Notes under the pieces: generated by a model
Told to the model about the DNA's origin: nothing
The model's database searches: none
Seen by the model: the letters and a program-made list of their open reading frames with translations, nothing else
Assembly: GCA_037447605.1 (NCBI GenBank)
Contig: CM074816.1
Coordinates: 635,873-699,872, forward strand
Reading direction: 5' to 3'
Source: Zygnema circumcarinatum SAG 698-1b
Lineage: Eukaryota > Plantae > Zygnematophyceae
DNA: 64,000 nucleotides
Translations under genes and position numbers: made by a program
Shown here: positions 16,127-57,330 of the stretch, piece after piece
Layout of the letters: the number at the start of each line of letters is the position of its first letter
Position numbering within the stretch: position 1 is the stretch's first letter

Positions 16127-16309
16127 GACGCGGGGGTGCAGTAGAGTTACCCTTCCTGAAAACAGTCACTTTTTCGCCGGGCAGCTTGTACAAAGGATTT
16201 TTTAGCGAAAAATGTTGTTTCATACTTTTCAGAGTACAGGCTACTCACGTTATAGTGACCGTGTCGGTCCCCACGTATTTGTGTCACTATATCCGTAATG
16301 ACAACACGC

Positions 16310-16889: not shown

Positions 16890-17020
16890 ACCCGTAATGA
16901 CCCGTTTGTTATTTCACATTTATAGTGTTAAGTTATTACAGATGTTTTTGCGGTGTATCCGTACACCTTCCATACCGTACACTGTACTTTTTGTGCAGTC
17001 ATTACAGTACAGTAGGGGGT

Positions 17021-17817: not shown

Positions 17818-17935
17818 CACTTCCTCATATTTTCCACCCTGGTTCCGGGCAAAATGAGGCGAAAATATTAAATTTGCATATATAAGGTTCGTGTTACGAA
17901 TAGACGGGCGGTATTATGTTAGAGTTCATGTTGGA

Positions 17936-18300
17936 CCGTATGTATCGTACCGTATAATATCGTACCGTATCGTACTGTATCGTTTAGCGTCGTATCGTAT
18001 CGTGACATATCGTGACGCATAAGCGGAGTTTTTAGGACTATGTTGTTCGTCTCATTGATGATGCCGTACTACGGATAGTACCGTATCGGGGAGTTTCGTA
18101 TCGTATCGAACATATCGTATCGTATCGTATCGTATCGAAGTCAAGAAGACGGGGAGAAGAGCGAGCGCCTCTTACGGCGGCACGAGCGGGGAGATTCGGT
18201 GAGTTTTGCGTAAGCCCGTAACGGCTAGTACAGATAGTACGGTCAGTACGGCCAGTACGAATAGTACGGACAGTACGGCTAACACAAGTTACCGTACAAA
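17936..18300. repeat. (CGTAT/CGTAC)n and (CAGTACGG)n degenerate short-unit repeats
   Basis: cgtatcgtatcgtatcg runs at 17940-18010 and 18095-18137; agtacgg/agtacga units at 18225-18280. Confidence 0.8.
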
Positions 18301-19599
18301 AAGGTGGTTTCGGCAAAATTGGGGCGAAAATATTGAGGGCTGTAGCGTAACGGAGCTGCGTTCGACGGATTTGCGTCAGTTCGATTGTACCTGACGTATG
18401 CCTCTTCCGTGTCACGGATCAACGGAATCCAGGAGCTGCCAACGGAGATTGAGAGAAGGCGGCGCCATGCGTTGGCGGCCCACGGAACGGCACACCATCC
18501 AGCAAGGCGCACTCGGAAGCGCCGCAAGATGCCGCCGATTATCATCAGTTGACCTATCCGAAGGCTCCACGTAGTCAGTCAGGCCTCTCAGTGGGCAGTT
18601 GGCCAATCAGAGACTGTCACTGCTAAGACTCAAGATCTATTGTCAGTGTTAAGTAGATGGGATGTCAGTGATGCTTTTTTGTCTTTTAGTGCTGGGCTTA
18701 GTATTTGTATTTGCTGTGTGGTTTGTTGTCTTGTTCTTCTTTCTTCTTTTCCTTCCTCTTCAGTTACAGCAACAGATGCTAAGTAAGAGAGAGAGAGAGA
18801 GAGAGAGTTCCATGCCATAGATAGAGAGAGAGAGAGAGAGAGAGAAAGAGTCTTCTTGCTGATAGCATTTAGACGTCCCATTCAGCCCAGTTAGACAAAG
18901 ATTTCAGTGAGAAGACAATTTCATTGTAATGACATTCCCCAGCCAACCGCTGGCTGGGGTGAGTTTCCAAAATGCAACCTTTATCTAAGTTGAGCACTGT
19001 TTTCCCTTTGCTGTCACTATGCCAAGCTGCCATCTTGTCCTAATCTGCCTTACGCTTATCCCAATGACCGATGATAACTAGAAGCCTAGCTAAGAGACTA
19101 GCCGAGGAGAGGACAGGGGAAGAGAGCCCCCAAGGAAGGNNNNNNNNNNATGCTGCAGGCAGACCCACAGAACCAACCCAACCCTTCATTAGTTTCAGCA
19201 CGGACGCGCGTGTGGCCGTACAGCACCTGCAGCTAGCTCAGCAGTCTTTGTTTAACCCCACTTATCTTGTGCTACAGGGCGCACTCCTTGGGGTGGTAAA
19301 TACGAGGACCCCCCACTGTACTGTACAGTACTGTACAGTACGAACGGGTAGAAAATTGGACGGTCTGGCGGCGGACGTGTACAAACGGGTGGCAAAGTGT
19401 ACGGCCAGGCGCGTGCACGGAAGGCTAACTGTACGAAAGAACGGCAGACTGTACGGTGGATGTACAGTACCTCCCAGTACTGTACTGTACAACGACGGCG
19501 ACAGGCAACCACCAAAGTCGGCGCCGCCTGGAGGGCGGACCGATATTTGTGTCCTTACTATAGATCCGTATGTATCAAACGCGTGTATTAATCTTAAAC

Positions 19600-21257
19600 C
19601 TTTTTCCATCGGTGGCCGACGATACTCACATCATTGGCCCTGCTGACCAGGTCGTTGCCGCGTTTACTGATTTTACTACTCGATTGGCCGCTATGCGTTT
19701 GACGGTAAATTTGTCGAAGTGTTTTGCTTGGTCTCCGGTTGGTATCCCTTCTACCCTTTCGCTCCCTTGTGGTATCCATACTTGTGCTGATGGAATTGGT
19801 ATTCGTGTTTTAGGCTGCCCTTTTGGCGTTGCATCTTATGTTGATCGTTTTGTTGATGATGCTTTGGTTGAGGATACGTCTCAGGTCGATGAGCTTCCAC
19901 ATCTTTCAGATCCTCAGGTGGCTTTTTCTTTGCTTCTCAACTTTCTTTGCTTCCAATGATACATCTCTTTTCGAGCTTACCTGTAGTTCCTTCCTTCCTT
20001 TGATCATTCAAATCTTTGGATGACATTTATTTCTGTATGTCACAGTCGCCTTTTGGGTCCTGGTATTTTTGACCGGCCCGAAGGTCCGCTTGCTCGTCTA
20101 CAGGCCTCCCTTCCTATTTCTGCAGGTGGTTTGGGGCTTGTCCCCACTGCGCGTGTTGCATCCCCTGCCCTTTTGGGTAGTTGGGCTCTCGTTGCTCCTA
20201 TTTTGGCTTCGCGTTTTATTGTGGCTGATCGTCCGTTGCTTCAGTCTGTTGTCGCTCATGTTGATGATGGTGATCTTCCGTTTCAGGTTGCATTGCGTGA
20301 TGCCCATGGTTTGCTTCCTGCTAGTGCTCAGGCTCGTGTGCCCCCATTTGTTTCGCTTGCCGTCGAGTCTGTTCCACGTGTCCAGCTCACTTTGACTGAT
20401 GAGGTTGTTGCTGCTGAGTTTTCTACCCTTATTGCGGCTCTTCCTTCTGATGTTGCGCGTGCTCGGCTTCGTTCTTGTGCGGGTCCTGGAGCTGGGGCTT
20501 GGTTGGCTGTTACCCCGATATTTTCCACCCTTCGTTTGACCCCAGGCCAGTTTCAGCTTGCAGCGCGACTTCGTCTCGGGCTCCCCCATCCGCCATTGCN
20601 NNNNNNNNNTGGTGTCCCCACGGCCGACTATTCGTGGCGAGCGTGGAGTTCGCCCTGATTTGGCTCTTATGGATGGTGCCCGGCGCATTTTTGGGGATAT
20701 TGTGTTGGCCGATCCAACCCGTCGTGATTTATTGTCTCGTGCAGCCCATCATGAAGGCGTGGCTGCTCGCGATGCGGCCCTTCGCAAGGAGCGTGCATAT
20801 GCTCACCGTGATGCGGCCGACGAGTTTGTTCCTATGGCTATTGAGATTTTTGGCTGCCTCGACACCCGTTTGGATACCTTCCTTCGCCAGTGCGCCCATC
20901 GCTCCTTCGAGATGCACGGCCCCGGAAGCCCTCCTCCGGCGATCTTGGCTACCTTTTATCGACAGCGTATTTCCGTCGCCGCCCGGCGTTGCTGCAACCT
21001 GCAGCAACTGATCTTTGGAGTTGTTGGTGATGCGTGTTGGTGGACTTCCGCCGCTCCCTCCTCGCGACATGCCTCATATCGGTGACCTTCGCGGCTGCTT
21101 CTAGGGCTGCGTTGTTGTGCCTAGGCGTAGTTTTCCGCTCCTAGCTTCGTGTTATTGTGTTTTGGTCCTTTGTGACCAGTCCTTCGTGGTTCCACATTTT
21201 GCCTTTGTCCATGTACATTTGATGGCCTCGCCATCGCGAGTTCAATGAAAGTTTCCA
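19600..21257 (+). mobile_element. 5'-truncated, decayed RLE (CRE-like) non-LTR retrotransposon, copy C (RT C-terminus, thumb, endonuclease, 3' UTR)
   Basis: RT motif FPSVADDTHIIGP..LTVNLSKC..GIRVLGCPFG; QASLPISAGGLGL; GAGAWL; RPDL endonuclease; stops/frameshift at ~19940-20020; candidate 10-bp TSD gtgtattaat at 19583-19592 and 21266-21275. Confidence 0.9.
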
Positions 21258-23598
21258 AAGAGTTGGTGTATTAATACACTGTATAATACATGCGTATTAT
21301 ACAACATTTTAAAAATATAGTGTATTTTTAATGTATTTAACGTATTTTTTTTATTTTCGTGGTTAGTTGAACAAAATTTGATTATAATATTGAAATTCCA
21401 GAACTTTCGAAGTCACGTCACTTGCCAAACACTCAACACGTGTGACTTGGTCCGTACACGTTCGTACACTCATTCCGTACATAATTTCCGTACGGGTCTA
21501 TGTTCCGATTGTACGGCTGTTAACAGTTGCGTTAAGGTATTATACAGTGTATAATACAGTATTAATACTGTATTATACATTGTATCGAACCTCAAAGTGT
21601 ATAATACGGATCTATAGTCCTTACAGCCATGGGGAATCTCGAACTGAGTTCGAATTCCGTAAGGAGCTCTCGAGAAATACAGCGCAGAAGTGCCATCCAA
21701 AGTACTTCCTTCGGAAAACATTTCCACACGTGGGATATCGTGGGATCGCTGGGACGAGGGGGCAGGCGAGGGAGTGGGGGCGGAGAGAGGCGGACGACCG
21801 CCTGCCTGAGGAGGCGCGAGAGGGAGAGGGAGAGGGAGAGGGAGAGGGAGGGGGAGTGGGAGAGGGAGAGGGAGAGGGAGAGGGAGGAAAGGAGAGGGAC
21901 TGTGAGAGTGGAGGGTCTGCGAGATGGCTTCCCCTCCCTCCCTCCTCGCGCTGCTGCTCGTGGCCTTCGCCCTCGCCCGTCTCCTCCACGTGGCCGCGCT
22001 CACACGTGCGCACATGGTCACGTACGGGCCTGCCAGTGGAGACACGGCGTTGCGCCGCTGCGACGACTGCCGCAGCGAATCCATATCACTGTCCGCGCCG
22101 ATGGCCCTCTTCAACTGGACGGTCGCATCCCTCGAGGTCTCTAGCAACGGCATTTTGGGTCTGCCCTCAATCAATTCCGGTTATACTAACGCGTGCGTGC
22201 CTCCTTCCCCTGCCCCTCCCTCTCTCTCCCTCCCTCTCTCTCCCTCCCTCTCTCCTTCCCTCCCTTCCTCCCTCGCGCCCTGCTCTCTCGAGAAGTGTCT
22301 CCCNNNNNNNNNNGCAGTTGTTGGTGATCGTGTTGGTGGACTTCCGCCGCTCCCTCCTCGCGACATGCCTCATATCGGTGACCTTCGCGGCTGCTTCTAG
22401 GGCTGCGTTGTTGTGCCTAGGCGTAGTTTTCCGCTCCTAGCTTCGTGTTATTGTGTTTTGGTCCTTTGTGACCAGTCCTTCGTGGTTCCACATTTTGCCT
22501 TTGTCCATGTACATTTGATGGCCTCGCCATCGCGAGTTCAATGAAAGTTTCCAAAGAGTTGGTGTATTAATACACTGTATAATACATGCGTATTATACAA
22601 CATTTTAAAAATATAGTGTATTTTTAATGTATTTAACGTATTTTTTTTATTTTCGTGGTTAGTTGAACAAAATTTGATTATAATATTGAAATTCCAGAAC
22701 TTTCGAAGTCACGTCACTTGCCAAACACTCAACACGTGTGACTTGGTCCGTACACGTTCGTACACTCATTCCGTACATAATTTCCGTACGGGTCTATGTT
22801 CCGATTGTACGGCTGTTAACAGTTGCGTTAAGGTATTATACAGTGTATAATACAGTATTAATACTGTATTATACATTGTATCGAACCTCAAAGTGTATAA
22901 TACGGATCTATAGTCCTTACAGCCATGGGGAATCTCGAACTGAGTTCGAATTCCGTAAGGAGCTCTCGAGAAATACAGCGCAGAAGTGCCATCCAAAGTA
23001 CTTCCTTCGGAAAACATTTCCACACGTGGGATATCGTGGGATCGCTGGGACGAGGGGGCAGGCGAGGGAGTGGGGGCGGAGAGAGGCGGACGACCGCCTG
23101 CCTGAGGAGGCGCGAGAGGGAGAGGGAGAGGGAGAGGGAGAGGGAGGGGGAGTGGGAGAGGGAGAGGGAGAGGGAGAGGGAGGAAAGGAGAGGGACTGTG
23201 AGAGTGGAGGGTCTGCGAGATGGCTTCCCCTCCCTCCCTCCTCGCGCTGCTGCTCGTGGCCTTCGCCCTCGCCCGTCTCCTCCACGTGGCCGCGCTCACA
23301 CGTGCGCACATGGTCACGTACGGGCCTGCCAGTGGAGACACGGCGTTGCGCCGCTGCGACGACTGCCGCAGCGAATCCATATCACTGTCCGCGCCGATGG
23401 CCCTCTTCAACTGGACGGTCGCATCCCTCGAGGTCTCTAGCAACGGCATTTTGGGTCTGCCCTCAATCAATTCCGGTTATACTAACGCGTGCGTGCCTCC
23501 TTCCCCTGCCCCTCCCTCTCTCTCCCTCCCTCTCTCTCCCTCCCTCTCTCCTTCCCTCCCTTCCTCCCTCGCGCCCTGCTCTCTCGAGAAGTGTCTCC
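21030..23598. repeat. ~1.3-kb duplication across the gap at 22304-22313 (retroelement 3' end, promoter and exon 1 of the next gene; offset 1296 bp); probably assembly redundancy
   Basis: Identical ORFs at 21442/22738 and 21924/23220; first copy ends at the gap. Confidence 0.85.
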
Positions 23599-26500
23599 CA
23601 CCTATTTACTTAGCTTCGCTTCTCCTTGCTGGCTGGCGTCTCTCGTTTTGGCGTCTTGTGCCTTCGATTTTTAGGCAATGTTAAATTCTTCAAACAATAT
23701 CTTTTTTTTAAATTAGTAGCATAAAATATGGAAGGCATGTGCTGGTCGCGTCCTTTGGTATAATCGACAGACGGTAATTTTCTATGCGCAGAACTTCCTC
23801 GGGCTACCCCTACATCGCTCCGTTTTATTATGACGCAGGTGAGTGATAGGACGCTCCTTCACTTCCTAGGATGAAATGAAACAAAATCTGACCTCTTCAA
23901 TTATCGAATAGCCAGCCTTGACAGAATCCGTAAATTTCGAGAAAAATATTTCAGCAATAACATACGATTGCGAAAATGAGTCGTGCAACAAACGAGCACG
24001 TTCGAAAATTATTTCTCGCGCTGATTTCCTAATTTTAGCGAGGCTCATGTATTATGTTACTATCGCATTCCTTCGATTTGTGCACAAATCGCAAAACATG
24101 GAGAGGTTCAGCTCCCCTGAGAACGGCCTGCACAAGGCATGCAGGAATGAGGCAAGAGGGGCAAAATAGAACAGAAGTGGTGAAGGTTCACAGGAAGCAG
24201 GCCAGGGCTACGAAGTTAGAGAGAGGGTAAAGTTGACAGCGGAAAGGCAGTCTTTTTGAACCTCTTAAACTTCCAAGACCTACTCGTGAGCTTAAGAAAA
24301 AGCGTCCTGTTGATCCTGAAACTCTTTCATTGCATGCAATTTCTTTCCCTGCATTCGCTTGAAACCATTATCCTTTCATCACCCTTACATAATCTGCTTC
24401 TATGCCAACAAAAGCGTTTGAAGAAATAGTAGCTCTGTGAAATGTGAGCGGAAAAAGTATCATTCCGTTTGCCTTTCCACGCTTAAGCTTGGCATGCGTC
24501 AAACATTTCCTAATGCGTGCAAACGGGCAAAAGATGAGAACTGCGTAAATAATTACCAGATTTACACAGTGGCTAATTCCTTCGTCAGGTTTTTTTAGTT
24601 CTCTTGGTATTGTCTTTTCTCTCCTTCACCTGTCGTCCTTTCAAACACTCATAATCTTCCTATTTCACCTTGTCACTTGCTTTTGCTTTGCTTCAGACAC
24701 TAGGCCCGACAATGGAGGATACGTGTATTACAGGATGCTGAGCAAAGTCAACAATTCGGTGAATCTCTCAAGCCTCGCACAGGATGTGAGGAATCTGTTT
24801 CCGTTAGATGTTGAGGCTCAAAATTTTCAGCCGGATGGAGGGTTTGTGCTGTCATACATCGATGTGGGATATTTCAAGTGAGTGTGTGGGCATTCACCGC
24901 TGTTTGACTCTGAACAATGTACTTCGCGTGTCCATGATTTCTTCTCTATATTTCCTCGATTCCATTTATCGCCGCCATTCGAAGGTGGTCGATGTGGCGC
25001 CTCTGTGCTGCTTTGGGGATGGCAGAGGAGCAGAAGAGTGGCGCTGCATAGACCATCTTGGACTTGGTCATGCGTGCAGGGTCAACCTCATGTCTCGTTG
25101 AATTGGTTGACACTCGAAAGCTGCACAGTCTGATTGTGCTCACGAATTGAGTTCGTTGAAAGGCATTATTTCTTTCTCCCAGTGCTATCTATAATTTTGA
25201 AGAGTTCGATGCTACGATGCTTGATGCAAGGCGCGGATATGGTGGCAGAACGGGTTTTATCTTTGAAGTCATTCCACGTTTGTTAAACAGCAAAGCAAGA
25301 GTCGACGTCCATCGTATTTTTTATTCTTGCTGAGAGTTGCTGCATATGATGCGTTTTTTCGTTGTAGTGATTCTATGCAGCCCTTTTTCGTCTTTGGATT
25401 CAATGAGCAATAGCTTTATTCGGCAGCACCTTTCTGTTCATCCAAATGTGTTCTGCAGGCATGTTTGCGACTCTCTCCTTACTCTTGTATGTGTGTTTTT
25501 TGGCGTTGCAGCTCTCATACAGATCTTGTGAACACCTTCCAAGTCTGGCTGGCATGGACCTCGTCTGCGCGCTGGCCTCGGACATTTTGCTGTTTTCTCT
25601 ACCCTGAGGATGGACTGCGAAAAACCGACAGTAAGCGACCCTTAACTCTGAATGGCGATATATGGAAGTACCTTCGCTTTAGTTCAAGATTGAATGTTTT
25701 TGAAACTTTGAAATTCTAGAACCTCACTGGGAGTTGATTTCGTATTGTTTGTTTGTTTTAAAAGTAGATAATTGAAGCCTCAGCTATAGTTCCAGCTTCT
25801 GCGGGTTCTACTATGTGGACGGCGTGTGGATGCAGCCCCAAGTCCAAATTTATTTGCATGCTTGGACCCCCCCAGCATGAATGCAAAATTGCCCTCCGGG
25901 GGTTGAAGGGGTGCCCCTCGTGCGCGCACAGCCCTCGCGTCCTCCGGCCCTCGCATGCAAACGTCCTCGGACCGCCCCGGCCGGAGGGCGACGAGGGCCG
26001 TTCGATTCGTCGACTGGACGAATGCGCTCCCTCCGATCCGCGACCTCTGGAAGCCTCTCACAGAACGCCACGTGGATGGGCCATCGATTCGCCTCCGTAC
26101 AACCCCCGTGCATGATGTCGTAGCAACCGGGCTAAACGCCACGTCATCGTGCGTGCAGGGAGAACTATGCTCTCCTCTCCGTACGATGCTAGTCCTCCAC
26201 CGGCTCTTTCTTCTGCAAATTTAGAGTTCTTAGGGTCGTTAAGACTTTTGGGGTTTTCCCAGAGGTTCAGAACTACGATGGGCATCTCAAGGAGTCCTGA
26301 AGCGAGTGCAATCGTAGACGTTACAAATGCAAAGCAGGAGGCGCCCTGCCTCCTGCTCCGCAGAGGAAGCTGTGGAAGCTCTCAGAGAGCAATCCACTAT
26401 GTAGAATAAAAGAACATCTGCACGGGCAGGAAAAAAATTGCATGGAAAAATGGAGCATTGGAAAGTATATTTGGCATCCCCATAGTCGCATTTGGGAAAA

Positions 26501-29500
26501 AAAAACATGCAAAAAATCTGGTACAGCCAGCTGCAAGCTGATACGGCTGCACACGTGGCAACAGCTACTCGCCGTGACTGGGTCCTCACCTACTTCGATT
26601 TTGGGTATAACTTGCGACTTGTTAGCGCCCGAGCGAGCTGAGAGCGAACGAGCAAGTTTGAATGTTGGCCGGCTATTGCAATTGCCTCTATGCTGTTGAC
26701 TGTCGCTGTGTTTTGTTCTGGGTGGAGGTGAGTTCAGCTAAATCTGACATTGTGCTTACAATTAGGACAAATATGTCTCACCAATGTACTCACTTTTGTT
26801 TGTTCACATCGACCCGTGCAAGACATGAAACTTCACTGTCGCAGTTATTACTCCTTGAGCTCTTGCAGTGCTCAGATGAGCCTCAAATTCAACATTTTTC
26901 ATCACTCATAATATTTTTTCTTGAGACACAGCATTTCTTGATGGGATGAAAGGTTACAGTCGCCTCAACTCGCGATAAGTTTCCCAACATCTGAATATGT
27001 GCAGTTTACCGCAGAAGTTTAAGTCGCTTCTTCACGGAATGATGGAAGCTAGCGAGTGTACGGAGGAGGAAACAGAGGGCTTGACACTGTGATCACGTGG
27101 CGGAGTGCAGACTATAAAACTGTCGGATACTACGCAGGCAACGGGGTAATGGATCTGTTGGCATCAAGAAACGTGTCGGATCTTCCTCTCCAATCAAATG
27201 TCAACATTCCTGGAAAGTGGTGCTTCAAATTGTCAGGTTATGCTCGCATGCAACCTCTACTGTAAGGTTTATCTTCTTGCAAGCAATGAATGTACTGTAA
27301 CATAAATCTTTCACCAGAAACAATGAGTGCAGTGGTGATTTTTTCTGCCCTTCTACAGATTGTTATATTTGTTGTTACAAAAGTGAGATCGTGTGATAAC
27401 TGAATTCGGCTTATTCTAGCTCTATCTAGCTGTGTGAAACCCATAAAGTGCGGAGTGATGCAGCTTTTTGGCGGCAAAGCAAACATTAATAATAGCATGT
27501 CCATTGCTGCTGCGGCCTACTCCTATTTTTAGCGTCCTTATACAGTGGTTGCATGTCCTTCGAGGATCTACATTACAATGGCAAGAACAGATTCGTATAA
27601 AATGAATTTGCTTTCAAAGAGTCCTATTTAAGGAAGAACTTGAACATGATTACACAAGTAAACAAGGCGGAGTGGACGAAAAGGAATCTCTCTAGCCCTC
27701 AGACGTTTCTCGAGTCTCTTTTTAGAAATTCCGATCCAGAATATACGTTAGTTAAGAATCCGTTCGAAAGTCCTCCATGGAGCCACTTTTGGACCTTGAG
27801 AGGCGCCTTGTTCCATGGTTAGAAAAGGAGAGCTTTTGGAGGACGAGCTGGTTCGCTGACTGAAAGAGGGAGCGCCTTTCCTATTTCCACCATTTCATGG
27901 AGCTGCGAGCACGCAGTCGACGCGAGAGTTCCGAAGGAAAGCATAGCCGCGCTTCCGACTATGACAGCATCGGGCAACTCCTTGCAATCATTACATGCAC
28001 GGCATCAGGAGTTGCAAGAGCATCCTTTCCTCTCCTCCCTCTCGCCCTCCCTCTCCCTGTCACTCCCTTCTCGACCGACCTCACTCCCTGCTTTAGCAGC
28101 AAGAGAGGGAGCTGTTGTAGCATTGCATTGCAGAAGCCATGCGTTGCAGAGCCTTGCCTTTCCTCTCATTTTTTAATTTCCCAAATTCTTTGAATCTTCT
28201 AGATTTGTAGAAATTTCCTTTGAAGGATTATTAGGGTTCTGAGGGTCTCAATCTGCGCATCCCAAGTGGCAGCTCTGCCACCTCTTTCCTTGACAGAACT
28301 CTCCCCTCCTATTGATGCCAGTCCTCCCACCACCTGTTGCCTCTGCAGAGGGGTTAAAAGGTGGTGAAGATTGCAGAATATGAGGGAACATCCGATAGCC
28401 TCTCCGAGCGAAATAATTATAGAATCGGTCAAAATACCGCTCCAAAATACGCTTAACGAAAAATGCGCTCTGCTCCTTTCTCGCGCGATCCCTCTGTGCT
28501 TCGAGAGCGGGACAGGAGGCTGCTGCAGCTGCCGAGGCAGCATTGTTATTCTCAGAGCCTTTCCTTCTAGGGATTTCCAATTGTTAGAATTCTTCATTCA
28601 GAATTCGGCATGTTCAGAACTCTTCCAGTTTTTATGAGCATCAGGGTATTCCTGCGCAGCGGCCAGGGTGGCAACTCTTCCTCCTCCACAGTGTTCAGAA
28701 ATTCCGTCTCCGCTCAATGACAGCTCTTCCAGCTTCTGCAGATTTTGAGGGTTTGCAGGATCATCAAGTTTTTTCCGTGTTTAGTGTTTCCACAGCTGAC
28801 TCAAGAAGTGCGTAAGGAAAGCATAGCTGCAATTCTGACTATGACGAAACCCGGATGCTCTTTTCTTGCATCATTTATCCATGCATCACAATTTCATATA
28901 CGGTTTCACGTGCGGCAAGAGCTCCCTTTTCCTATCCTCCCACTCCCCCTCCTCTTCCTCTCAGTCTCCCTTGCCCTCTTCCTCTCCCTCTCACTCCCTC
29001 CACCATCGACCTCACTATCTGCTTCAACAGCAAGAGAGGTCGCGGCTGCAGCTGCCGAAGTAGTATCGCAGAAGCCATGCGTCTCAGAGCTTTTACATCC
29101 CTCTCAAATTTAGGTTTCCCAAATTTTCAAAATTCTTCATGGTTAGTTTATTAGGGTTTCGGGGTCGCTCTCTGCGCTGCTGCCAAGTTGCAGCTCTTCC
29201 CCCCCCCCCACCCCATTCAGAGCTCTCCTCTCCGATCGATGCTAGTCCTCCACCGGCTCTTTCTTCTGGAAATTTAGAGTTCTTAGGGTGATTAGGACGT
29301 TTAGGGTTTTCCCAGAGGTTCAGAACTGCCATGAGCAACTTAAGGAGTCCTGAAGCGAGTTATTCGCAGACGTTACTTGTTCCGCAGAGGAAGCTGCGGA
29401 AGCCCTCAGTGAGCAATCCATTATATAGAATAAAAGAACAGCTGCACGTGCCGGAAAAGAATTGCATGGAAAATTGGAGCGTTGGGAAGTATATTTGGCG

Positions 29501-32500
29501 TCCCCATAGTCGTATTCGAGAACCAAACAAGATGCAAAAAAACTGGTCCAGTTATCAAAAGATTGGCTCAGAGACTTGCTCTCTTGAATTTAAGGTGAAC
29601 GGGAAATGAGAGACTCCTCTCTGTGACTGTACGGGTTAGGGCTGTGGGAAGTAAAGGGAAAATATCGGATGGGACACAAGGTGCCATTTGGAATTTTGTG
29701 TGATGTTGAGTTTTTGATGCCAGTCTCTGAGTTGCGAATTCCACCACCAGAAAGTTCGTCCACCAGTCGATTACTCCTGTTCTATCCTCGCACTTCTGCG
29801 AGTTACACAACAGATTCTTTGCTCTTCCACTTATTTCCGATACTCATTTTTTTTAAGCTTATGCAGCGCTTGCTACTCCGACGGCCTTCAACTATGTGAA
29901 TTTCAATACCAGCAGTGCTCCCATCATGCAAGGCGATGCAAAAGTTGTCGCCAACAGGCTGCAGCTGACGAATTACAGCACGTGGCTGGCTGGGAATGCA
30001 TTCCATCCGGCTCCGATGACCTTGCTCAAAAACGGAGTTGGAGGTTGCGAAGCAGCTTCTTTTAATGCGAGGTTCTCGTTTCTCATATTTAACAACATGC
30101 AAGGCTGTGATGCGGATGGCCTTGCTTTCACCCTTGTTTCTTCCAACGCGGACTTGAGCAAAATTGGGGCAGTCGCGGGGGGAGGTCTCGGGTACTCCTA
30201 CGGAGGATCGGCCACAGTTGGTTCCATAGCCGTTAAATTCGACACTTTCTACAATTTTGACTACAATGAGCCTAATGGAAGACATGTTGGAATACTTGAG
30301 AACCTGAACTCCACGACCATTGCATCGGCACCTACGTCCATCCTCGACAACTTGTCGGCAACCTCCACGAAGTATGCATGGGTGGAATACAATAGCGCAA
30401 CCAGCCAGTGGTCCATATTCTTCAGCAACGCGACTAGCAAACCTGCTCAGCCTGTTATCCGTTATACCAGGTCCCTCTGCAGTGTCCTTCGGCCACCCAC
30501 CTGCGCGGACTGTGTCAATATAACATCGGCCTTTGTTGGATTTACAGCCGCAACGGGGGATTGCTATGATGCTCATCAGATTTTATCGTGGAGCTTTGAC
30601 AGCAACTGGATGGGTGCGTTTCCAAACGTTTGTACCTTCATGCGTGCCGTGAGAGTGCATTTTGCATACATAGGAATGCCCTAAGCCTTTTGAATAGAAT
30701 TTCCCTCACTTTTATCGGTTGCTTGGTCGCATGGAAGCGAGATGATCGAATTCTGAGATTTACTGAGAGATGGACAGTAACGCATTTCAAGTTGATGGAT
30801 AGCGAGTAGTTGCGACCATCGAACGTCACAAATGCAAAAGCAAAAGGAAGCGCTCTGCTTGCAGCCCCGCTGATGAAGCTGTGGAAACTCTGAAAAAGAA
30901 AATTTGCAGGATTTTTTCATGCTTAAACAGATAATTAAATGAATTATATACATTCTCCTATCCACATCTCGTTTTGCAGGAAATTGTGAGCTGTCACAAT
31001 CATCGTTTCCTGTAAAACTTAGATTATGTTGTGTAGCTAAGCTGTTGGGCGTCAAACGGTATGCTTAGCCGACTGGGACAAAAAGGCATTTAAGAAGAGG
31101 TTATAATGTGCGGTCGGCCTGCCGCCGCCACGGCCGGCCCGTCCACGCACTTTCCCTATACCTAAGTCTACATTTCCCCACTCGGTTTTTCAAGCCTGAT
31201 ACCTACTCCCTACAAAATCATTTGAAATTAGAACTATTATAGTGCTGTATGCATGTCATACAGTCTCTTCTGCAGGTTAAGTGACTACAGACTTCGTCTA
31301 ACAACCGAACTACTTCGGTTCGACTTCGTCTAGTATCTTGAAACCTAGTATATCGTGGACGTGCGTCATTTTTCCGCTCAAATGTATAACAGAGGCAGAG
31401 TTTATTCTAGCTCACATGTATAACATAATACTTAAGATTTTCTCCAAGGAGTTTTTGCTAAATATTATTACCATAACTATACCAATCAAAACCCTTGTAT
31501 AAACCAAGCATATTGAAAGTAGGCAGTTTGAATTTTTCAGATTGTCTGCACATTTAGATTTTTGCAGTTTTCACTGTGCAGTTTCCACACCTACAAGACC
31601 GCCGCCAAGTCGACCGCCTCCGCGATCGCCACCACCTCGTCCACCTCTCAGACCACCTCCCTCTCCACCCAAACCTCCACCTCAAAAGCCCCCTCCAAGG
31701 CAACCTCCACCGAAACAGCCGCCGCCGCCGCCGCCTTTTTCGCAAGGTAAGGAAGAGTTGCGTGTAATGTCCTGTATGCTCGCTCGCTTGTCGCTTTTAT
31801 CGCAAAAGCAGGAACTTCCATCTTCAGATTACCAAAGGCAGTCGATATTGTGCACGCTCGTATAAGTAATTGGTGTGTGACGAACAATGCTTCAGCTGGA
31901 TAAACCCACCAATTCCGGCAATTCAACATGGCAGCCAGAAGTCTGAGCATCTCCGAAATGGGCGCATCAATAGCTTTAAGAAGTTTTCTTGAGTTTCAAT
32001 TCTTATAATATTGCCCATTTTGTGAGCCGTAGAACAATACTGTAGAATTGCAAGACTATTTTTGCACGAGTCAGTTTTAAAAGGTTAAGCATTATTTTGC
32101 AATTCTTCTAACATGCCAAGGCTCTTTCTGTTTCTTTTAATACGTGCACCAATATCAGTTTATTTCTTTGCGCAATTATTACCACTTGTGCTCACTTTTT
32201 TTTGTGTGTGATGCAGTTGTCACCTATCCCAGCTTTACCAATTCTGGAGTCATTCGTCAATTGGCGGCAGCGGTAGTTAACTCGACCTTGCGACTCACAC
32301 CCGACGATTATTTTCTATCTGGAAATGCAGTCCATGAACGGCCCATTTTGCTCTTGCGGGACGATGGTAACGGAGGTTGCCAAGCGGCTTCATTCAAAAC
32401 CAAGTTCTCTTTCAGAATCTGGAACAACGGGAATTGTGAGGCCGATGGACTTGCATTCATTCTTCTTGGTTCCAACGTGGTATTAAGTGGGTTTGGAAAT

Positions 32501-35500
32501 CAAGCCGGTGGATCGCTTGGATATTCTTATGACTACAATACTTCTGCATTGGGAAGCATGTTAGTTTCGTTTGATACCTACACCAATTCCGACTTGGGAG
32601 AACCGGACAACCGTCATGTCGGCATACGCGAATTCTTCGATCTCTACGTCATCAAGACGCAGACATCTCCCCTTCTAGACGACCTCTCGACTGTGAAGTA
32701 TGCGTGGATTGAGTATGACGGCGCGGCCAGCATTTGGAGCGTATTCTTGAACAATGCCAACGCAAAACCCGCATTCCCACTAGTCACATACAGTCGCAAC
32801 CTGTGCAGCCAACTGCGACCAACCACGTGTACCACATGTGCCGGCGTGGTTTCTGCGTACGTCGGATTCACTGCTGGAACAGGGGCGTGTACGGACAACC
32901 ACGACATTTTGACGTGGGACATTCAAAGCAGTTGGCCAGGTATTCGAACGGAAGCGATGATGGGTTGTCATATTTCGCATAGTCGTTTCCAGTTTGACGG
33001 AGCAATGAAAATAAAGTCTCGAAAAGGACCACCGTTAAAGGTTGGAGTTAGCTTTGTATTTAGCAGTTTCAATCTCAGCTCGTTCCATATGCATTTATTA
33101 TATGGAGTTTTGTTCGTGATATGTTGTGAGCAGCTTATATTGTTCTTATTTTTTCTTTATCTTTTTTCTTATTTTTCTATTGTTTCACTTCCTCCCTTAG
33201 CACCGTCGCCACCTCGGCCTCCTCCTCTAACTCCACCTACACCTCGCCTTCCGCCAAGGCCAGTTCAACGACCGCCGCCACCCCCATCGCCACCGCCACC
33301 GCCACCACTTTCTCTAGAAGGTAATCAAGAGTCATATGTGTTAGTCTTGTAGTCTTGCACACTCGCTGCTTTGATTTTTAAGCATGTATATTCATGAAAA
33401 TGAGTCATTTCTGTCCACCACAATCCTTTCTTTGAGTATACGATAGGCTTTCCTACTGCATGTCAGAGACTTCGTAAGGGTTAAGAGGAGCCTGGGTAAC
33501 TTATGTCTTCTGTTAGCGGCACATCCTGCTAACCTGGCGGAAGTCTTGCTGCCTTTCTGAGTAATATTACCTGGTGTGTTCAGCTGAGCTTCTATATCGA
33601 GTCTTGTTATGAACACACACTGTTTACGTACACACAGCTGGTACAAGATCAGAAGACCAGGAAAGTGCTACGCTTAAAAAGTCGAATCCATCTCTATATG
33701 TTACAGCTTTGTGAAGGTTACCTGTCTGTTTTCTACTGAGTGAAGCATTATCTCAACCATTCGGTAATGTTTCTAGGATTTTACTCAGCCACATTTGACT
33801 ATGACTTCGAAATAGCAAGGTGAATACATGAAGCAGCATCGTTTTTTAATGTTCTGTTTTTAATTGCTGGTATGGCCTCATGCATGCAGCGGTCAGCCTT
33901 CTCCAGTTCAAAGATGCAATTACAAACGCTTCCCAAACCGTTCTAGGAGGTTGGCTGCCGTCGACTCCTGTTTGCAGTTGGTGGGGTGTAAATTGCACAT
34001 CCGGCGTAGTAACTAAGCTGTAAGAGCGACTTTCTACCCCACATCACACTTAAAAATCAATCCTCAAGTTGCAGATATGTTAAAAACTTACTGGGAGAAT
34101 GGAAAAAGGTATGGGGATTGATGAAGGACACAAGGAGCTAACCAATCATGTCATATTTGAAGGAGTAGCTTGACAAATCCATGTGAAGTGAACTTTCACG
34201 ACATTGTTTTTTGGATATTGTGGGCAGTGACTTGAGTACGGCGCAGTTGGATGGCCTCATCTCATCTTCAATCGGTAACTTGGCGAGCTTGGCGGAGTTG
34301 TAAGCATCTGGCAATCTTGCTTGGGCCTCCCAACATCATGAATCATCGCGTGTTGGCAATGTCTCTTTAGGTTAATTAATGACACGAAGAACTGCCACAT
34401 CGTATCATTTCGATCACCTACATGCATACAATCAGAGTTTGGGATGGTTTTGGATGAAGGCCGTGGCCCACTTCGCTTCCAATTATGTCGTCAGTTGATC
34501 CCTGCCCTTGCGATGATGTCATATGCGGAGGCATCTTCCAAGCTCATTGAACCTTCTCTAGTTTATCTGCTATACGTGGTTTTTCCTATAAGCAGGTTGC
34601 GAATTGTGTTCTGGAAGTGCAGGATCAACCAGAACTTTTCAGACCTTGCTTGACAACTATATATTTGGTGCCTCACAGGATCTTGTGCAGCAATAACTTC
34701 AGAGGAAGCATTCCGGATTCCATCGGTCAGCTTCAAAATTTAAAAAGACTGTACGTCATCATGTTTTCCTTCTATCCATTATTTTGCTCCCATATCGCTG
34801 TGCTCCTTTCCTCTAAAATTTTCGGAGTAATAATAGGGAACGGACTTCCAAGAAATGTTCGCTTTCTCATCTACATCTGCCTGGAATACCTCACACTGGG
34901 ATTGAGCACTCGACTCACTCACAAGACATTTTCGTTTTCCGTATCCATGTAGGAATATGGGACCATTGCAATAGCTTGATCATCGACGTTCTTCCTCTGA
35001 CAGTGCCTGCTGTATTGTTGCAGGATCTTGTCAAACAACTCCTTAACAGACGTGATACCTTCCTCCCTGCGGTTTTCGACAGCCCTTATGGAACTGTGAG
35101 TGGCAGAAACCTGGTTTTTGGTTTTTTGGTTTTTGGATGGTTTTTGGTTTTTTTTTTTTTTTTGTTTTTTTTTTTTTTTGTGTTTTTGTTTTTTGGATGT
35201 TTTGGATGTTTTGGATGTTTTCGGGTTTGTCTTTAAAGCAGCTGATAACGTCCTTGTCAGATTGAGACGGGCATGGATTGATTCGTCCAAGGGTAGTGCT
35301 TGCTAGCAATTGGTAAATGTTTGAAAAATATATTCTAACACAGCACATACCCCTCGGAATGTTTCTGTAGAAGCAACGCATACCACTCTGACTCTACAGA
35401 ATTGCAATTCAAAAGCTTCTAATTATGTGGTACTTCGTTCATTATTTATTTGATAAGTTAACATTGTTGACCACATGCATCTGGGCGTTTTCCAAAAAGT

Positions 35501-38500
35501 GGCTTGATGTAACTGCGGCAAGTTTGGCGAACCTGCCATCTTGCAGGGACCTGTCGAGCAATCAATTGGTCGGTAACATTCCCTCGTCCCTCGGCAATCT
35601 GACTTCACTAACGGCCCTGTGAGTGCCGATTTAATCGTAAACCCTTCTTTCTTGCACTTTTGGAAACAATGATTCTATTCTGAGCCGGTTTATGCCTTGC
35701 GGAGCACTTCACGCCTTCTTTGATCCAAAGCGATCAGTGTGCATGGTGGCGCCATCGCTCGATGACATTGTCCGATATAGAGTCATGCCCACTTTTAGCT
35801 ACCTCAGATTAATCGGGAAAGGCAACTCGCAATAATTTCGGATATCACAATTTGCAACTCAGCGGGCATTCTCAAAGGAGAGCACCCTTGATCGCCCTTA
35901 AACGTTTGAAAAAGCTTTGATTTGACTCACTAATTGCTTCCAGAAATCTTGACAAGAACAATTTGAGCGGCCCCATCCCCACATCGATTACCAACCTCAG
36001 AAGCTTAAGAACGCTGTAAGTTGCTTTACATCCATTCACTTTTCGCTGTGATTCCCTCGGGCTTCATAGATGCCCTTTGAAAAATCGAGAGAAAATTGGC
36101 GTTCGAGAGAAAATGAGAAACCGAGAGTCCGGGGCAAAGAGGGTCATGGAGCGAGAGGCACCCTGAATCCGTGCTCAGTGGAAAAACTCGAAAAATGTCA
36201 ACTGTTAATTCTTTACAGCCCATTTTGAGCAGTTTGGGAGATCTCAATGCCTAAGACACTTTTGTCACAATCGATGCTTTTATTAGTTCGGCTTACGTAA
36301 ACATCAACGTGGTGTCTCTTGGTCAGGAGGTTATCCAACAATCGACTAACCGGCGGTATTCCCACAGGTCTTGGGAGACTTGTAGCCATCAGTGAGCTGT
36401 ATGGCGACTCTCCATTATCTCCATTGTTTCTCGGAATCTTGAAATTGTTTGAAGCTCATGCTACCTGTGGAGAATTAGCCAATACCAATCATGGCACATC
36501 TTAGATCTATTACAACCACCAAAACCTCCGGTTTCACACTTAGTTTTAATCAGACTGAGGAACGGTCGTCAATGTGTGGCGTCAAACAGACGATTGGTAG
36601 CATGCCAACATCCAAAGCATGGCGTTTGCTGGCATGTGGTGTACTAGTTTTTCAAAGTTCCAAGATCAATCTAGTTCCATGGATGTCGGATACAATGCCA
36701 GTTCCGAGTTTTAAGAGCAAAGCGATTAGCTCATTGCAGCCACAATGTTGCTCCTTGCAGGTCTCTCTCAAACAACCTTCTCATTGGTCCATTAGTGCTT
36801 ACCTTTGGAGTACTATGGGAAATTTCGGTTTCCTTCCATGACAATTTCTTATCGGGCGAACTCACTGTCACGTTGAATGGCGTCAATTTAAACTCCCTTC
36901 TTCTCCCTCCCTTCGGTGATGTTGCTATGAACTGCTTCAGTGATCTCAGCATGCAAAGGGACGGTGCTTCCTGCACGGCATTTTGCAAGGCAAGCCAGCC
37001 ACAGGGCGCTTGCGGAGGCAATGGGTTCTGCTATTACAATGGAAGCCAACCGACATGCTCATGCGATGCTGGCTATAAGAACTCCGTAGATGCAAACATC
37101 TGTGTGTTTGGTGAGGACCTCTCTTCCTTCCAAGCTTTCCACCTGGTCCATTCTACAAATGAGATGTTTCTCCTCTCGCCCATCTCGTCTCCCTTCGTTC
37201 TCCCTCCCACTCGCTCTCCTTTTCTCTCCAACTCCGCCCCCAAACTCCACCGTCGCTTATCCTCTTGCCCTCCCCCGCTCTCAATCAATGTCAACCACAG
37301 AGCCTACATTGTCCTTGCATATCTGATTGTGTGCATCCTTGCCTCTTTCTGTCCTCAAATCACCCACATTGATGTCGGATGGACGCGCAGGGGGTCGCGG
37401 TTCCGGCCTTGACTCGACGCAGCCGTTGACTTTTCCGAGTCAGAATCGGTACTTCCGGTACGCGAGCGCGGGGTACTTGCGGCGGAAGAGCGGCAAGGCG
37501 TCGTGGCAGGTCGCCATCGCGTGGAACTGGACGGAGGAGGGGGCCACTCAGGCAGTCAAAGATCAAGGACTTTGCAGTGAGTAGAGAGTACTGGACAGGA
37601 AGTTTTGTGTTCGGTTTCCAGTCCTTGTAAACTGGCCACTCTAGATGGGAATTAACTTTTTTTTCTTCTGTGCCGTATGCTCTCGTGCAATATTGGTTTT
37701 TTCTCTGATCTCTTTTTTGTTTCGTGGTTTTGGACTTGTAGGTTTGTGTTGGATATTCGCTCCCATATCCGCAATAGAAAGTGCGATATATATTGTCAAA
37801 GGCGGACAATTAGACGTTCCTCTTCTTTCAGAGCAGCAAGTGCTGACTTGTTCACCCAGTGGAAAAACTTGCGATTCCGGTGGATGGCCGACAGAGGCAC
37901 TCGAATATGCTGCAAGCAACAGCCTCATTCCTGCACCAAATTTTCAAGGGTCAGACAGTTGTGCTCAGGTGAGAGACAATCACGTTCTTCTCGTTTTATG
38001 TTTGCGTTGAGCCATTGTCCCATGCAATCCAGACGAAAAAAAGTGTACTAAATGTCTGCTGCCAACTGAAGTAGACGATCATTTTTGGTGTGCAGGGAAC
38101 AAGTGCGTCTACAATTACATCCTATGAGAAAGTGCAGTTCAACGGCTGGCTGGGATTACTGCTGATCCTGCAGCAGCAGCCAGCAATTGTCTTCCTTGAA
38201 GCAAGCGGCGATAGCTTTACCAACTACAACGGAGTAAGATAGTCATCCTGCTTTGTAAATTCTCTCCTTCTCTGCGTTTTCCTGTGTTTGACATAACAAG
38301 CAGATTTCTTTTGTACCTTTTCCTTCGTAAATGCGGCGTTCATCTCCCTGTTATTACCACCATTGAGCGTACATGCCAGGTGGTGACGTCTTGCGTTCTC
38401 TCCCCCTAGCAGCATAATAACCTGAGCCTATGCGATTATGATGATCTGTTGGGAAAAGGTTGTCCCGTCGACAGTTATATCACGTGCATCCAATGCTGCG

Positions 38501-41500
38501 AAAGAAAATGATTCAGGAAAGCCGATGTCTCGATGACCAGCCGTACAATCTTCTCTATTTATTCCCTGACATGCATGCCTTTGATCGGAAGCAGGCTCTT
38601 GTGGAGTCCAAAGAATGACGAGAATGAACAGCATACCGCATGTTTGAAGAATCTCACTTTTCAAATGAATTTCAATGGTTTACCATTCTGCTTGCTGCAG
38701 GGCGTGTTTGATGATCCGGATTGCTTTTCCAACGGAGTGGATCACAGCGTGGCAGTGGTCGGGTACGACCTGAGCGCGGATCCACCCTTTTGGATCCTCC
38801 GCAACTCGTGGGGGCGCAACTGGGGCGAGCAGGGCTCCATGCGCCTCAAGATCGCCGGCGGCGCGGGCATCTGCGGGATCAACAGCCTGCCCGCGCTCAT
38901 GCCCGTCGTCAGACCCCAAGGTCTGCCGTCTTCCCCTCTGCTTTTAGGGTTTCTCGTCAAGATTAGACGTGTTACTTATCGATGAGACTCTACGTCACGC
39001 TCGTTTGACTGACTTTGTTTTTCAACAACGGAAAGAACTGTGACGCGGGCCTTCTTTGATTGGGCATTGTTTTTTGCAGACGACGATCCCTGCTTTAGGA
39101 AGAGCTACGCGAATACGGTTCTCAGGATATCGAATGGCCCTGGATCTATGAACCCATGCGGAAATGGGTTGTGTTCTCCCTCCGGCTCTACAAATCTGTG
39201 CGACTGCTCGAATGGTTTTGTGGCGGTGACCAACACCGATGGTTCCCAGACATGTGCACCAGGTGATGACTCTTTATGCTCCGATTGAGCTTTCATGCAT
39301 ATGCTTTTTTGACGGAAATATCCGTCTATTTTTTCATCGAATTAACTGCGAAACCTTGTACTATGCAATGCAGTGTCTCCGTGCACGTTTGCAGGCAGCA
39401 ATCCCTGCGGTGTGGGCACATGTCTGGACGCCACCTCCCCTCCGGGCACATACGTGTGCGCCTGCCCCATGGGCTACGCTCCCGACTCCCCCGACGGCAC
39501 TCTCACGTGTGTTCCAGGTGCGCCCTCATGACTCCTAAACGCCGAATTCTGCTTCAAAATCTATCACATACCTTATATTGTTCAGGAATCAGCTCTGAAA
39601 GACGTACCGAAGGAACTGCTGCAATTAGAACCACATTCTACGCTTTGGCTTATCGATCGAAAATCAGGAATTGTGTTCGTCCCTGTGGCATTCGTGGCAA
39701 TGACTCAAGGAAGGTTTTGAAGCATAGAATTACCATGCGACAATACCACACGAATAATGTATTTAGAAAGTGGGTGGTATTATGCGCATGACTCATTCCT
39801 TCCCGCGGTTTAAAAATGCGTGCCTAAATGAGTAAGTCAAGTGGCGGCGCCTAAAGGAGAAGCGCCAATCCGCTCATCACGCGCTGCCGTTCATACTTTC
39901 GCGCTTTTTCGCCACAACCTCGCTTTAAAGTCGAACATTGGAGTTGACACTCACATGGTAGAATGATTAGAAAGTGCCAGTGATGATGATCATCATGATC
40001 TGCCTTCATGTGAAACTGCAATGCAGTCTAATTAAAGAAGCTGGGAAAAGAGTTTATGACCCTTCTCCACGGTTGCAATTTCATCTTCCAGCTGCTCTGA
40101 GCACGGGCCCGCAAACCTTCACCGTTCCGGTTGGTGCCAACATGACTTGCTACACGATTTACACCACATTTGGAATCAGCAGCACTGATTTCTTCGCCCA
40201 AAATCCGGTGAGTCCGAATCGTTGCAAAACTTGCACATTACCATTTTAGAATATGCAAGTACGTAGAGGAAGTTCTGAGAAACCCTTTTTTTTTTTTTCA
40301 CATCCCATCCATCTCGGGCCACAATGTGTATTCTGAAAATAGTAACTGTGGGCTCTTCCTCGTGATGGTTTCCATTGCATCGGAGGAAAAAATGTTGACG
40401 TTTTCCTCATGTCAAACTCAACCCTTCCCCGCATCCACAGACTCTGAACTGCAACGTTCCAGTTCCGGGAGGCACGGTGATGAATGTGAACAATCGCAAG
40501 GACTGTTCCGTGGTTTATGCTGTCAATGGAGTGAGTTTACTCCTTTCAAATTCACCTCATTCAAATGCAGCTCCAACTGCTGTGTCTCCTTGCAAGCTGT
40601 CTCGAGGGCCTCAACACTTCACAAGCATGACCACTGTATCTGACCACTGATCTGTACATGAAACCTGAACAGTGTCTGCCACTCGTCAGCTAACGAGTTA
40701 CCGAGTATGCTTGTTGCAGGGTGATACATGTGAAACAATAGCAGCAGTTTTCAATGTGTCCTCAATCGCCGGGCCCGGATCTCCGAACCCTGAATTGGAC
40801 TGCTCGCAGCTGAAGCCATTCCAGCAGGTTTGACCTCACCTTTTGTGGGAAGTCTCCAATGCCGCGTATGCAGTCGGAGCTGATGCATTGTATTTCCTGC
40901 TATGTTTACTATGCAGGTTTGCATTCGAAGAGGAGTTTTGGAATATTTGGGACCATGCACAAGGGAATATGATGTCCAGCCTGGAGAGTCGTGCTTATCA
41001 ATTGCAGCAAATTACCTCGACAAAGACATTTGGCAGTTCTACAAGCTCAATCCCGGAGTGTATTGCGGCAAGCTGCTGCTCCGTACTAGCAGCACTGCTG
41101 AACTGGGTCAACAGGTGAGTACTCGCAAACAGGCNNNNNNNNNNGACAAAGACATTTGGCAGTTCTACAAGCTCAATCCCGGAGTGTATTGCGGCAAGCT
41201 GCTGCTCCGTACTAGCAGCACTGCTGAACTGGGTCAACAGGTGAGTACTCGCAAACAGGCTTTGAGTATCTTATGCTTCGCACGATGTAAACGCCTTGTG
41301 TATCTCCCAAGTTGTGACGTCTTTGACACAGCTGCTCACATCAACCAAGCACGAGATGAAGTTTTGAAACAAGGCATCTCGAGGTCCTCGGAACTATGAA
41401 GTGCTTCGCGTAGACTGTTCGGCCTTCATATCATGTGGTGGTGCTCTCCTCCGCGTGGCAGGTGTGCTTGGCCGCGGGGGCAGTCGGAGCCAGTGCGACC

Positions 41501-41668
41501 TGTGCTGGCACGTCGATCAACAAGCCGGCGGGAGCCACTTGCGCCGATCTCAAGAAATGCTTTCCGAAACCTTCCACGTTCAAAAAGTTGAACAGGGCGG
41601 CCTGCACAACGAAGAATTTAAAGAAAATGTCGGCGATTTGTGTCCCGCTAAACAGCCCGTGCACTTAG
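23220..41668 (+). CDS. Secreted multidomain protein (~1741 aa): SP-NIDO-L-lectin-ProRich-L-lectin-ProRich-LRRNT-LRRx~8-EGF-papain C1A protease-EGF-EGF-LysMx3-4
   Basis: 28 GT-AG exons: 23220-23488, 23792-23838, 24697-24877, 25512-25630, 27111-27236, 29867-30613, 31582-31746, 32217-32939, 33201-33320, 33890-34019, 34228-34299, 34679-34750, 35024-35095, 35547-35618, 35944-36015, 36327-36398, 36761-37110, 37391-37576, 37742-37968, 38096-38233, 38701-38920, 39080-39262, 39374-39517, 40092-40207, 40441-40530, 40720-40827, 40917-41114, 41462-41668. Sum is 5226 nt (divisible by 3), every junction is phase-compatible and no internal stop was seen. N-terminus MASPPSLLALLLVAFALARLLHVAA is signal-peptide-like; no TM helix seen. 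Confidence 0.82.
23300..27236 (+). other. NIDO (nidogen-like) domain, exons 1-5
   Basis: SESISL..LEVSSNGILG..YIAPFYYDADTRPDNGGYVYYR..VRNLFP..FQPDGGFVLSYIDVGYF..VNTFQVWL..FCCFLYPEDGL..VGYYAGNG..QSNVNIPGKWCFKL matches the NIDO pattern (IAPFWADVD, GxVYYR, NTFQ, GFNAGDG, SNVxxPGxWxF). Confidence 0.85.
26165..29550 (+). repeat. Diverged intronic repeats (26165-26520 ~ 29222-29550; 27930-28330 ~ 28810-29250)
   Basis: Shared blocks such as gatgctagtcctccaccggctctttcttctg..aatttagagttcttagggt and cagcaagaga..gcagaagccatgcgt; no recognisable protein. Confidence 0.75.
29867..30613 (+). other. Legume (L-type) lectin domain 1, single exon
   Basis: QGDA..LQLT..GNAFHPAP..SFNARFSF..DADGLAF..GGGLGY..AVKFDT..N..HVGI..AWVEYN..FVGFTAATG..HQILSWSF. 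Confidence 0.93.
32217..32939 (+). other. Legume (L-type) lectin domain 2, single exon
   Basis: LRLT..GNAVHERP..SFKTKFSF..EADGLAF..GGSLGY..VSFDT..N..HVGI..AWIEYDG..YVGFTAGTG..HDILTW. Confidence 0.93.
37520..38920 (+). other. Papain-family (C1A) cysteine protease catalytic domain
   Basis: WNWTEEGATQAVKDQGLC|SLCWIFA (oxyanion Gln, catalytic Cys), LSEQQVLTC, CDSGGW, QQP, VDHSVAVVGY (His), FWILRNSWGRNWGEQG (Asn), GICGIN. Confidence 0.95.
40092..41668 (+). other. Three clear plus one degenerate Cys-containing LysM domains
   Basis: FTVPVGANMTCYTIYTTFGISSTDFFAQNPTLNC; YAVNGGDTCETIAAVFNV..NPELDCSQLKPFQQVC; YDVQPGESCLSIAA..FYKLNPGVYC..GQQVC; GATCADL..FKKLN..C..ICVP. Confidence 0.85.

Positions 41669-56270: not shown

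Positions 56271-57330
<1,060 letters not shown>

Follow-up and report, generated by a model that had tools for sequence, protein, structure and literature searches.

The locus analyzed here, in the genome of the alga Zygnema circumcarinatum, raises the question of whether lectin, LRR and LysM modules are joined to a papain-like protease in a single secreted protein and, if so, what functions such a protein might perform.

Gene structure and module composition

The gene model was rebuilt independently from the sequence, and all positions are those of the window, that is, the whole 64-kb stretch of DNA that was analyzed. The rebuilt model places 28 exons on the + strand between 23220 and 41668, all introns being of the GT..AG type, and yields 5226 nt and 1741 aa, with the terminal codon as the sole stop; the open frame of the original prediction had identical figures. 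The encoded modules succeed each other in the order leader, NIDO, lectin, proline-rich spacer, lectin, proline-rich spacer, LRRNT, six LRR, LRR cap with EGF, 45-aa segment, papain, two EGF and four LysM, and are distributed over the exons as follows:

23220-23488, 23792-23838, 24697-24877, 25512-25630 and 27111-27236, + strand: predicted signal peptide and putative NIDO, exons 1-5, aa 1-247 (weak Pfam matches)
29867..30613, + strand: legume (L-type) lectin 1, exon 6, aa 248-496 (Pfam, 5e-39; PDB lectins, 1e-14)
31582..31746, + strand: proline-rich spacer 1, exon 7, 58% Pro
32217..32939, + strand: L-type lectin 2, exon 8 (Pfam; spliced to exon 9 in reads)
33201..33320, + strand: proline-rich spacer 2, exon 9 (read-confirmed introns)
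33890..37110, + strand: LRRNT, LRRs and EGF-like module, exons 10-17 (Pfam; all introns read-confirmed)
34228, 34679, 35024, 35547, 35944 and 36327 (starts), + strand: six plant-type LRR exons, 72 nt each
36761-37110, + strand: final LRRs, cap and EGF-like module, exon 17
37391..38920, + strand: family-specific segment of ~45 aa and papain (C1A), exons 18-21 (Pfam; introns read-confirmed up to exon 21)
39080..39517, + strand: two EGF-like modules, exons 22-23 (Pfam, alignment to relatives)
40092..41668, + strand: four Cys-rich LysM modules and stop codon, exons 24-28 (weak Pfam, structure comparison)
41135..41144, no strand: assembly gap in intron 27 (41145-41260 duplicates 41019-41134 exactly)

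The module borders coincide with phase-1 introns throughout, as exon shuffling predicts, and the locus is best read as a single gene assembled through exon shuffling, a clear phase-1 case. The exon-by-exon Pfam searches recognized both lectins (Lectin_legB, 5e-39 and 2e-28), LRRNT_2, Peptidase_C1 (6e-9 and 1e-15) and EGF, with weak matches for LysM. The NIDO (PF06119) matches, obtained with the exons searched singly, were weak as well (E 2e-4 and 5e-3, under the curated cut-off), with exons 4 and 5 covering profile positions 99-126 and 144-184; in the atlas comparison, NIDO was the lead for exon 1, at 0.90. The predicted protein contains 22 N-glycosylation sequons and 63 cysteines, and its sole hydrophobic stretch, according to the hydrophobicity analysis, begins at residue 5. 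Neither a kinase domain, sought with Pfam and in the translated model, nor a transmembrane helix beyond the N-terminal hydrophobic stretch was detected, in agreement with the original prediction of a signal peptide with no membrane segment and no kinase; the signal peptide is assigned by hydrophobicity alone.

The 116 nt on either side of the gap at 41135-41144 are identical, which points to an unmerged contig overlap, and because the gap lies inside intron 27, the frame is unaffected; exon 27 is complete ahead of it, and its junction with exon 28 is colinear with ten relatives. A frame break at 41135 is thus ruled out, the gap being an overlap artefact within the intron. A candidate exon at 26159-26220 was rejected because it has no GT donor and sits in a repeat, as was an acceptor at 27005, with stops in every frame. 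Dispersed repeats that are 68-81% identical are present in introns 4 and 5 (26169-26526/29222-29551 and 28023-28345/28950-29268), hence the longer introns around the border between NIDO and the lectin. Across another gap, at 22304, a 1285-nt segment containing the promoter and exon 1 is duplicated (21019-22303 vs 22316-23599, 99.9% identical); this is probably an assembly overlap, a true tandem copy being the less likely alternative.

Transcript evidence and the joining of the modules

The region is contained in five runs, and contigs from four of these, produced in two studies, were aligned on 32800-38790; no run is recorded as RNA, and the contigs were taken as transcripts because they are spliced. 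These contigs are assemblies, not single molecules, and say nothing on inducibility. Within the aligned region, introns 8-20 were all found at the predicted sites, and a single 2222-nt contig of run X1 extends from lectin 2 through the spacer, the LRRs and the EGF module to the last papain exon. Each of the four runs examined yielded transcript-type contigs, which shows that the gene is expressed in all of them. The joins between lectin 2 and the LRRs and between LRR/EGF and papain are both spliced in reads, which rules out separate genes at either point. The proposed combination of binding modules and a protease in one secreted chain is supported, with reads confirming the stretch from lectin 2 to the papain domain, the catalytic triad of which is intact. 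In the 3' part, aa 850-1735 are colinear with a complete transcript ORF, P0277 (39% identity over 996 columns), and exons 21-28 are colinear with complete transcript-derived relatives. We consider the full 28-exon model, including the joins from NIDO to lectin 1 and from lectin 1 to lectin 2, to be likely. The word share of 0.43-0.48 (0.33 expected from the exons) was dropped as proof of the lectin 1 join because intron-containing contigs inflate the share.

The NIDO front calls for separate consideration, as a question of gene structure that is independent of the readings of function discussed below. Exons 1-5 could encode a NIDO-only secreted protein, with the lectin-to-LysM part beginning elsewhere, given that intron 5 is the longest (2630 nt), bears repeats and has a weak donor, that NIDO was present in none of the relatives fetched and that the homolog search with exon 1, the scope of which was proteins of ~49-156 aa, came out blank. 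However, the reading frame is maintained through the front exons, a heuristic scan of introns 5, 6, 7, 9 and 17 for another leader exon, one that combines a hydrophobic stretch with an in-phase donor, found none, and a double-lectin-headed relative, P0274, is a complete transcript ORF. We regard such a separate front as unlikely. Retention of intron 5 would stop translation after 9 codons.

Allelic variation clusters in the LRR-cap exon (36761-37110) and in spacer 2 (33201-33320), with changes such as T1034N and W1039A, papain exon 19 being invariant in the same contig. The allele of run X1 carries an in-frame 18-nt insertion in spacer 2 and 27 substitutions in exon 17, with 0 in papain exon 19, and an in-frame 18-nt deletion in exon 17 is common to X1, X2 and X3. 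This concentration of allelic change is a hint of a variable recognition end.

A family of algal proteins with a constant body and variable heads

The original prediction knew of no characterized protein with this architecture, but the comparison with other algae does not support uniqueness. The body LRR-EGF-papain-EGF2-LysM4 defines a large family, as yet without a name, in Closterium and Mesotaenium, and more than 150 predicted or transcript-derived relatives from Closterium, Mesotaenium and other algal transcriptomes possess the papain-EGF-LysM body, headed by a lectin or by LRR. The lectin search led to proteins in which papain and LysM are also present; a search started from these gave 200 proteins, and the 120 listed are Closterium predictions, mostly with the arrangement LRR-EGF-lectin-papain-EGF-LysM. 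A second search yielded four proteins from Mesotaenium together with Trinity ORFs marked as complete, the heads being a lectin, a double lectin or LRR. A few Closterium predictions carry added EF-hand domains (P0288, P0289). The body is constant across the family and the heads vary, consisting of LRR, a lectin, a double lectin or a lectin inserted after EGF. The family HMM gave an E of 7e-98. The Zygnema papain domain shares no more than 48% identity with that of any relative found and, in the papain tree, falls within the family on a long terminal branch outside the main Closterium clade, its exact position being weakly supported.

The proteins of Closterium (CAI6005672.1, CAI5465050.1) and Mesotaenium (ME000166S01720, ME000065S09001) and the EukProt Trinity ORFs show the same segment-papain-EGF2-LysM4 order, at 35-40% identity (up to 48% in papain), and, as in Zygnema, contain LRR-EGF and L-lectin modules and lack I29. 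The differences lie in the heads: in the Closterium members the lectin is located between EGF and papain, whereas here the lectins precede the LRR, and the Trinity members contain either LRR or one or two lectins, whereas here NIDO, two lectins and LRR are combined. Neither a head of NIDO and two lectins nor lectins ahead of the LRR were seen in any relative fetched in these length-limited searches. The Zygnema gene is a new head variant of an algal family whose body is already widespread; it is among the most elaborate members seen, yet one of many. No paper describing the family was found in a literature search that covered few subscription journals. For Zygnema, NIDO and 26 Lectin_legB architectures have been reported (PMC11096116).

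Mosaics of C1A and LysM with extra lectin/EGF modules have also been catalogued in Chlamydomonas (PMC6362431, Suppl. Table 3), and the C1A-LysM combination is said not to have been retained in vascular plants (PMC6362431). As in the Zygnema protein, the Chlamydomonas and Volvox mosaics combine papain and 2-3 LysM or chitin-binding repeats with lectin/EGF modules or a proline-rich spacer; the accessory modules in Chlamydomonas are SRCR, FTP, WSC, C-type lectin and galactose-binding, whereas LRR, L-lectin and NIDO are not listed. A wound- and pheromone-induced protein of Volvox, the subject of Amon et al. 1998, reportedly contains three chitin-binding repeats in addition to a cysteine protease and an extensin-like spacer.

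The papain domain and the segment preceding it

The papain domain contains Q1195, C1201 (37747-37749), H1335 (38743-38745) and N1355, with the NSWG motif kept, and Pfam Peptidase_C1 matches both exon 19 and exon 21. The model of a homolog (pLDDT 79) is matched by chymopapain with Z 33 and rmsd 1.6, and the family profile is nearest to ficin (E 6e-48) and actinidin. Judging from these features, the domain has a C1A fold with an intact triad and is apparently active. The residues around the catalytic Cys are unusual (CSLCWIFAP), with Ile and Pro just past the Cys where most relatives have Ala and Val. The nucleophile position in 147 relatives is occupied by Cys in 101 and by Ser in 35, with a gap in 10; the Ser-for-Cys members, about one quarter of the family, including P0283 of Mesotaenium, are probable pseudo-proteases.

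Such replacement of the catalytic Cys, together with the Ile/Pro pair and the long terminal branch of the Zygnema domain, would fit a mainly non-catalytic adhesion or agglutinating protein in which the papain fold, having little activity, would serve as a scaffold for binding. Nevertheless, Q, C, H and N are retained along with the NSWG motif, and an allele divergent enough to differ at 27 positions in exon 17 shows no difference in papain exon 19; for the Zygnema protein, we therefore find this explanation highly improbable. The catalytic fold and triad are common to land-plant C1A proteases (RD21, ficin, actinidin), but the Zygnema protein differs from these in having neither the auto-inhibitory prodomain nor granulin and in being set in a mosaic of 1741 aa. 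By its sequence, it belongs to C1A but falls outside the canonical papain-like proteases of plants.

The papain-like proteases of plants usually have the auto-inhibitory prodomain directly ahead of the mature domain (PMC6288466). Pfam detected no I29 in exon 17, in exon 18 or in relatives of full length, there is no ERFNIN motif, and only ~40 aa separate EGF from the mature domain. In the place of I29, there is a conserved family-specific segment of ~45 aa, with an FRYAS-G core and a tryptophan, which appears partly folded in the homolog model, with short beta strands (pLDDT 57-81), and aligned to no propeptide structure, the matches starting at model residue 43. The segment might inhibit the domain, act as a chaperone or do no more than stabilize it. 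The family raises the question of how a cathepsin-L-like papain folds and stays in check without I29. A possible reading, in line with the Factor C/MASP analogy of the original prediction, is a ligand-gated zymogen: the active site would be covered by the 45-aa segment, or by the LRR-EGF arm, up to the binding of a microbial glycan, whereupon the enzyme would become active and start a response. The conservation of a segment, predicted to be partly folded, where a propeptide would end is consistent with such gating in the absence of I29, and the Cys-to-Ser members could be regulatory partners; against it, P0279 has the same body with no LRR or lectin head, the segment resembles no propeptide structure, and no cascade substrate, cleavage site or activation site was identified. 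Gating of this kind appears quite unlikely to us. Limulus Factor C and the MASPs are S1 serine-protease zymogens that are autoactivated by ligand. They, too, are secreted mosaics of recognition modules and a protease, but there is no homology, the protease here being a cysteine C1A enzyme as opposed to S1.

LysM modules, lectins and proline-rich spacers

In a homolog model (pLDDT 86), the C-terminal block consists of four LysM units with the beta-alpha-alpha-beta arrangement and flanking cysteines. The best structure matches are the chitinase LysMs 5BUM (rmsd 1.4 A) and 4PXV and the fungal effector Ecp6 (4B8V); the matched chitinase LysMs are from Equisetum and Pteris. The modules are thus closest to the fern-chitinase/Ecp6 type rather than to the CERK1 type that was originally envisaged. 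In this copy, LysM1 and LysM4 are degenerate, the GD-x-C motif being missing. By analogy with the matched proteins, we infer that the block binds chitin or peptidoglycan. The fern and horsetail LysM chitinases (PrChiA, EaChiA) and Ecp6 likewise have Cys-rich LysMs that are attached to a hydrolase or secreted, the distinction being that the Zygnema LysMs are paired with a protease and not with a GH18 chitinase.

The two lectins are 50% identical to each other, which suggests a duplicated lectin-spacer cassette. Both keep the L-type fold and the Asp of loop A, the Gly of loop B and the Asn of loop C, but the Mn/Ca site (E-x-D...N...D...H) is incomplete, with the Mn-binding Glu, retained in most relatives, replaced by Lys in lectin 1 (EFDT) and by Ser in lectin 2; this loss makes sugar binding by the lectins uncertain. 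The lectin search yielded no close relative: the best match was ~42% identical, which indicates that the collection searched does not include this alga's own proteins, and large multi-lectin proteins, those with a named source being bacterial, made up most of the top matches. Among the closest lectin relatives (~40%) is a EukProt transcript product, P0003/P0151, a receptor kinase of algal type whose ectodomains are two L-lectins in tandem. The lectin head may have been derived from, or may share a common source with, tandem-lectin receptor kinases of this kind. As regards the extensin-like stalks of the original prediction, the proline-rich spacers are real, but "extensin-like" is a loose description of sequences with only two SPP motifs each.

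Possible functions of the protein

The LecRK, LRR-RK and LysM-RK receptors possess a transmembrane helix and a kinase, both of which the Zygnema protein lacks. Its mode of action would resemble that of the papain-chitin-binding mosaics of chlorophytes and the LysM chitinases of ferns. As the most economical reading, we tentatively favor, with slightly less than even confidence, a tethered protease directed at surfaces of chitin or peptidoglycan, as opposed to a Factor C-like zymogen. The protein would be secreted and probably heavily glycosylated; its four C-terminal LysMs would dock on GlcNAc polymers (chitin or peptidoglycan) of microbes at the cell surface; and docking would concentrate the papain domain such that nearby surface proteins would be digested. 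With I29 absent, the papain domain is proposed to need no removal of an I29 propeptide. The exchangeable head of NIDO, two L-lectins and LRR on proline-rich spacers could either fix the enzyme to the wall or mucilage of the alga itself or broaden its binding, and the binding modules would aim the enzyme without switching it on. In favor of this reading are the spliced contig from lectin 2 to papain, the colinearity with P0277, the catalytic triad, the LysM matches, the constancy of the body under changing heads, the phase-1 module borders and the precedents in Chlamydomonas and Volvox. The unusual CSLCWIFAP motif, the degenerate LysM1 and LysM4, the lectins devoid of the Mn-binding Glu and the expression in every run examined count against it, and the Ser substitutions in the family imply that binding may outweigh cutting.

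Instead of microbial surfaces, the protease might process the alga's own wall or mucilage glycoproteins during growth, adhesion or conjugation, with the lectins and LysMs binding self glycans. This possibility, which we deem somewhat unlikely, is compatible with the detection of transcript contigs in every run examined, with the matrix-type character of NIDO, EGF and the proline-rich spacers, with the presence of NIDO in filamentous Zygnema (PMC11096116) and with the inclusion of cysteine proteases in the Penium secretome (PMC6027541). It accords poorly with the conserved C-terminal block, which is similar to the LysMs of chitinases and fungal effectors. Furthermore, chitin is not known to be a wall polymer of these algae, which also argues against self-matrix remodeling.

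If, as the tethered-protease reading implies, the family targets microbes, it would represent a surface defense route that predates or parallels receptor-kinase immunity. In the algae most closely related to land plants, this apparently undescribed family has its LRR, L-lectin and LysM modules on a secreted papain, not on a membrane kinase. An extended version, in which such proteins were lost in land plants while ectodomains of this type moved onto receptor kinases, is very unlikely in our estimation.

Neighboring genes and repeats

Directly upstream of the promoter, at 16300-21250, there are gap-broken pieces resembling non-LTR retrotransposons in both orientations. Farther upstream, an LRR receptor-like kinase gene (1-13615, + strand) contains many 72-nt LRR exons, a membrane helix at ~10925-11030 and a kinase from ~11176. 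On the other side, EXO84-like exocyst exons followed by a sugar-kinase-like fragment, as judged by eye, occupy ~54500-57330 (+ strand). At ~59861-64000 (+ strand), a second family-like gene begins with a leader, LRRNT and five near-identical 72-nt LRR exons and runs off the window; its LRR exons recur with a period of ~200 nt and are 75-84% identical at the DNA level, introns included, and its LRR-cap and EGF exon is 34% identical to exon 17.
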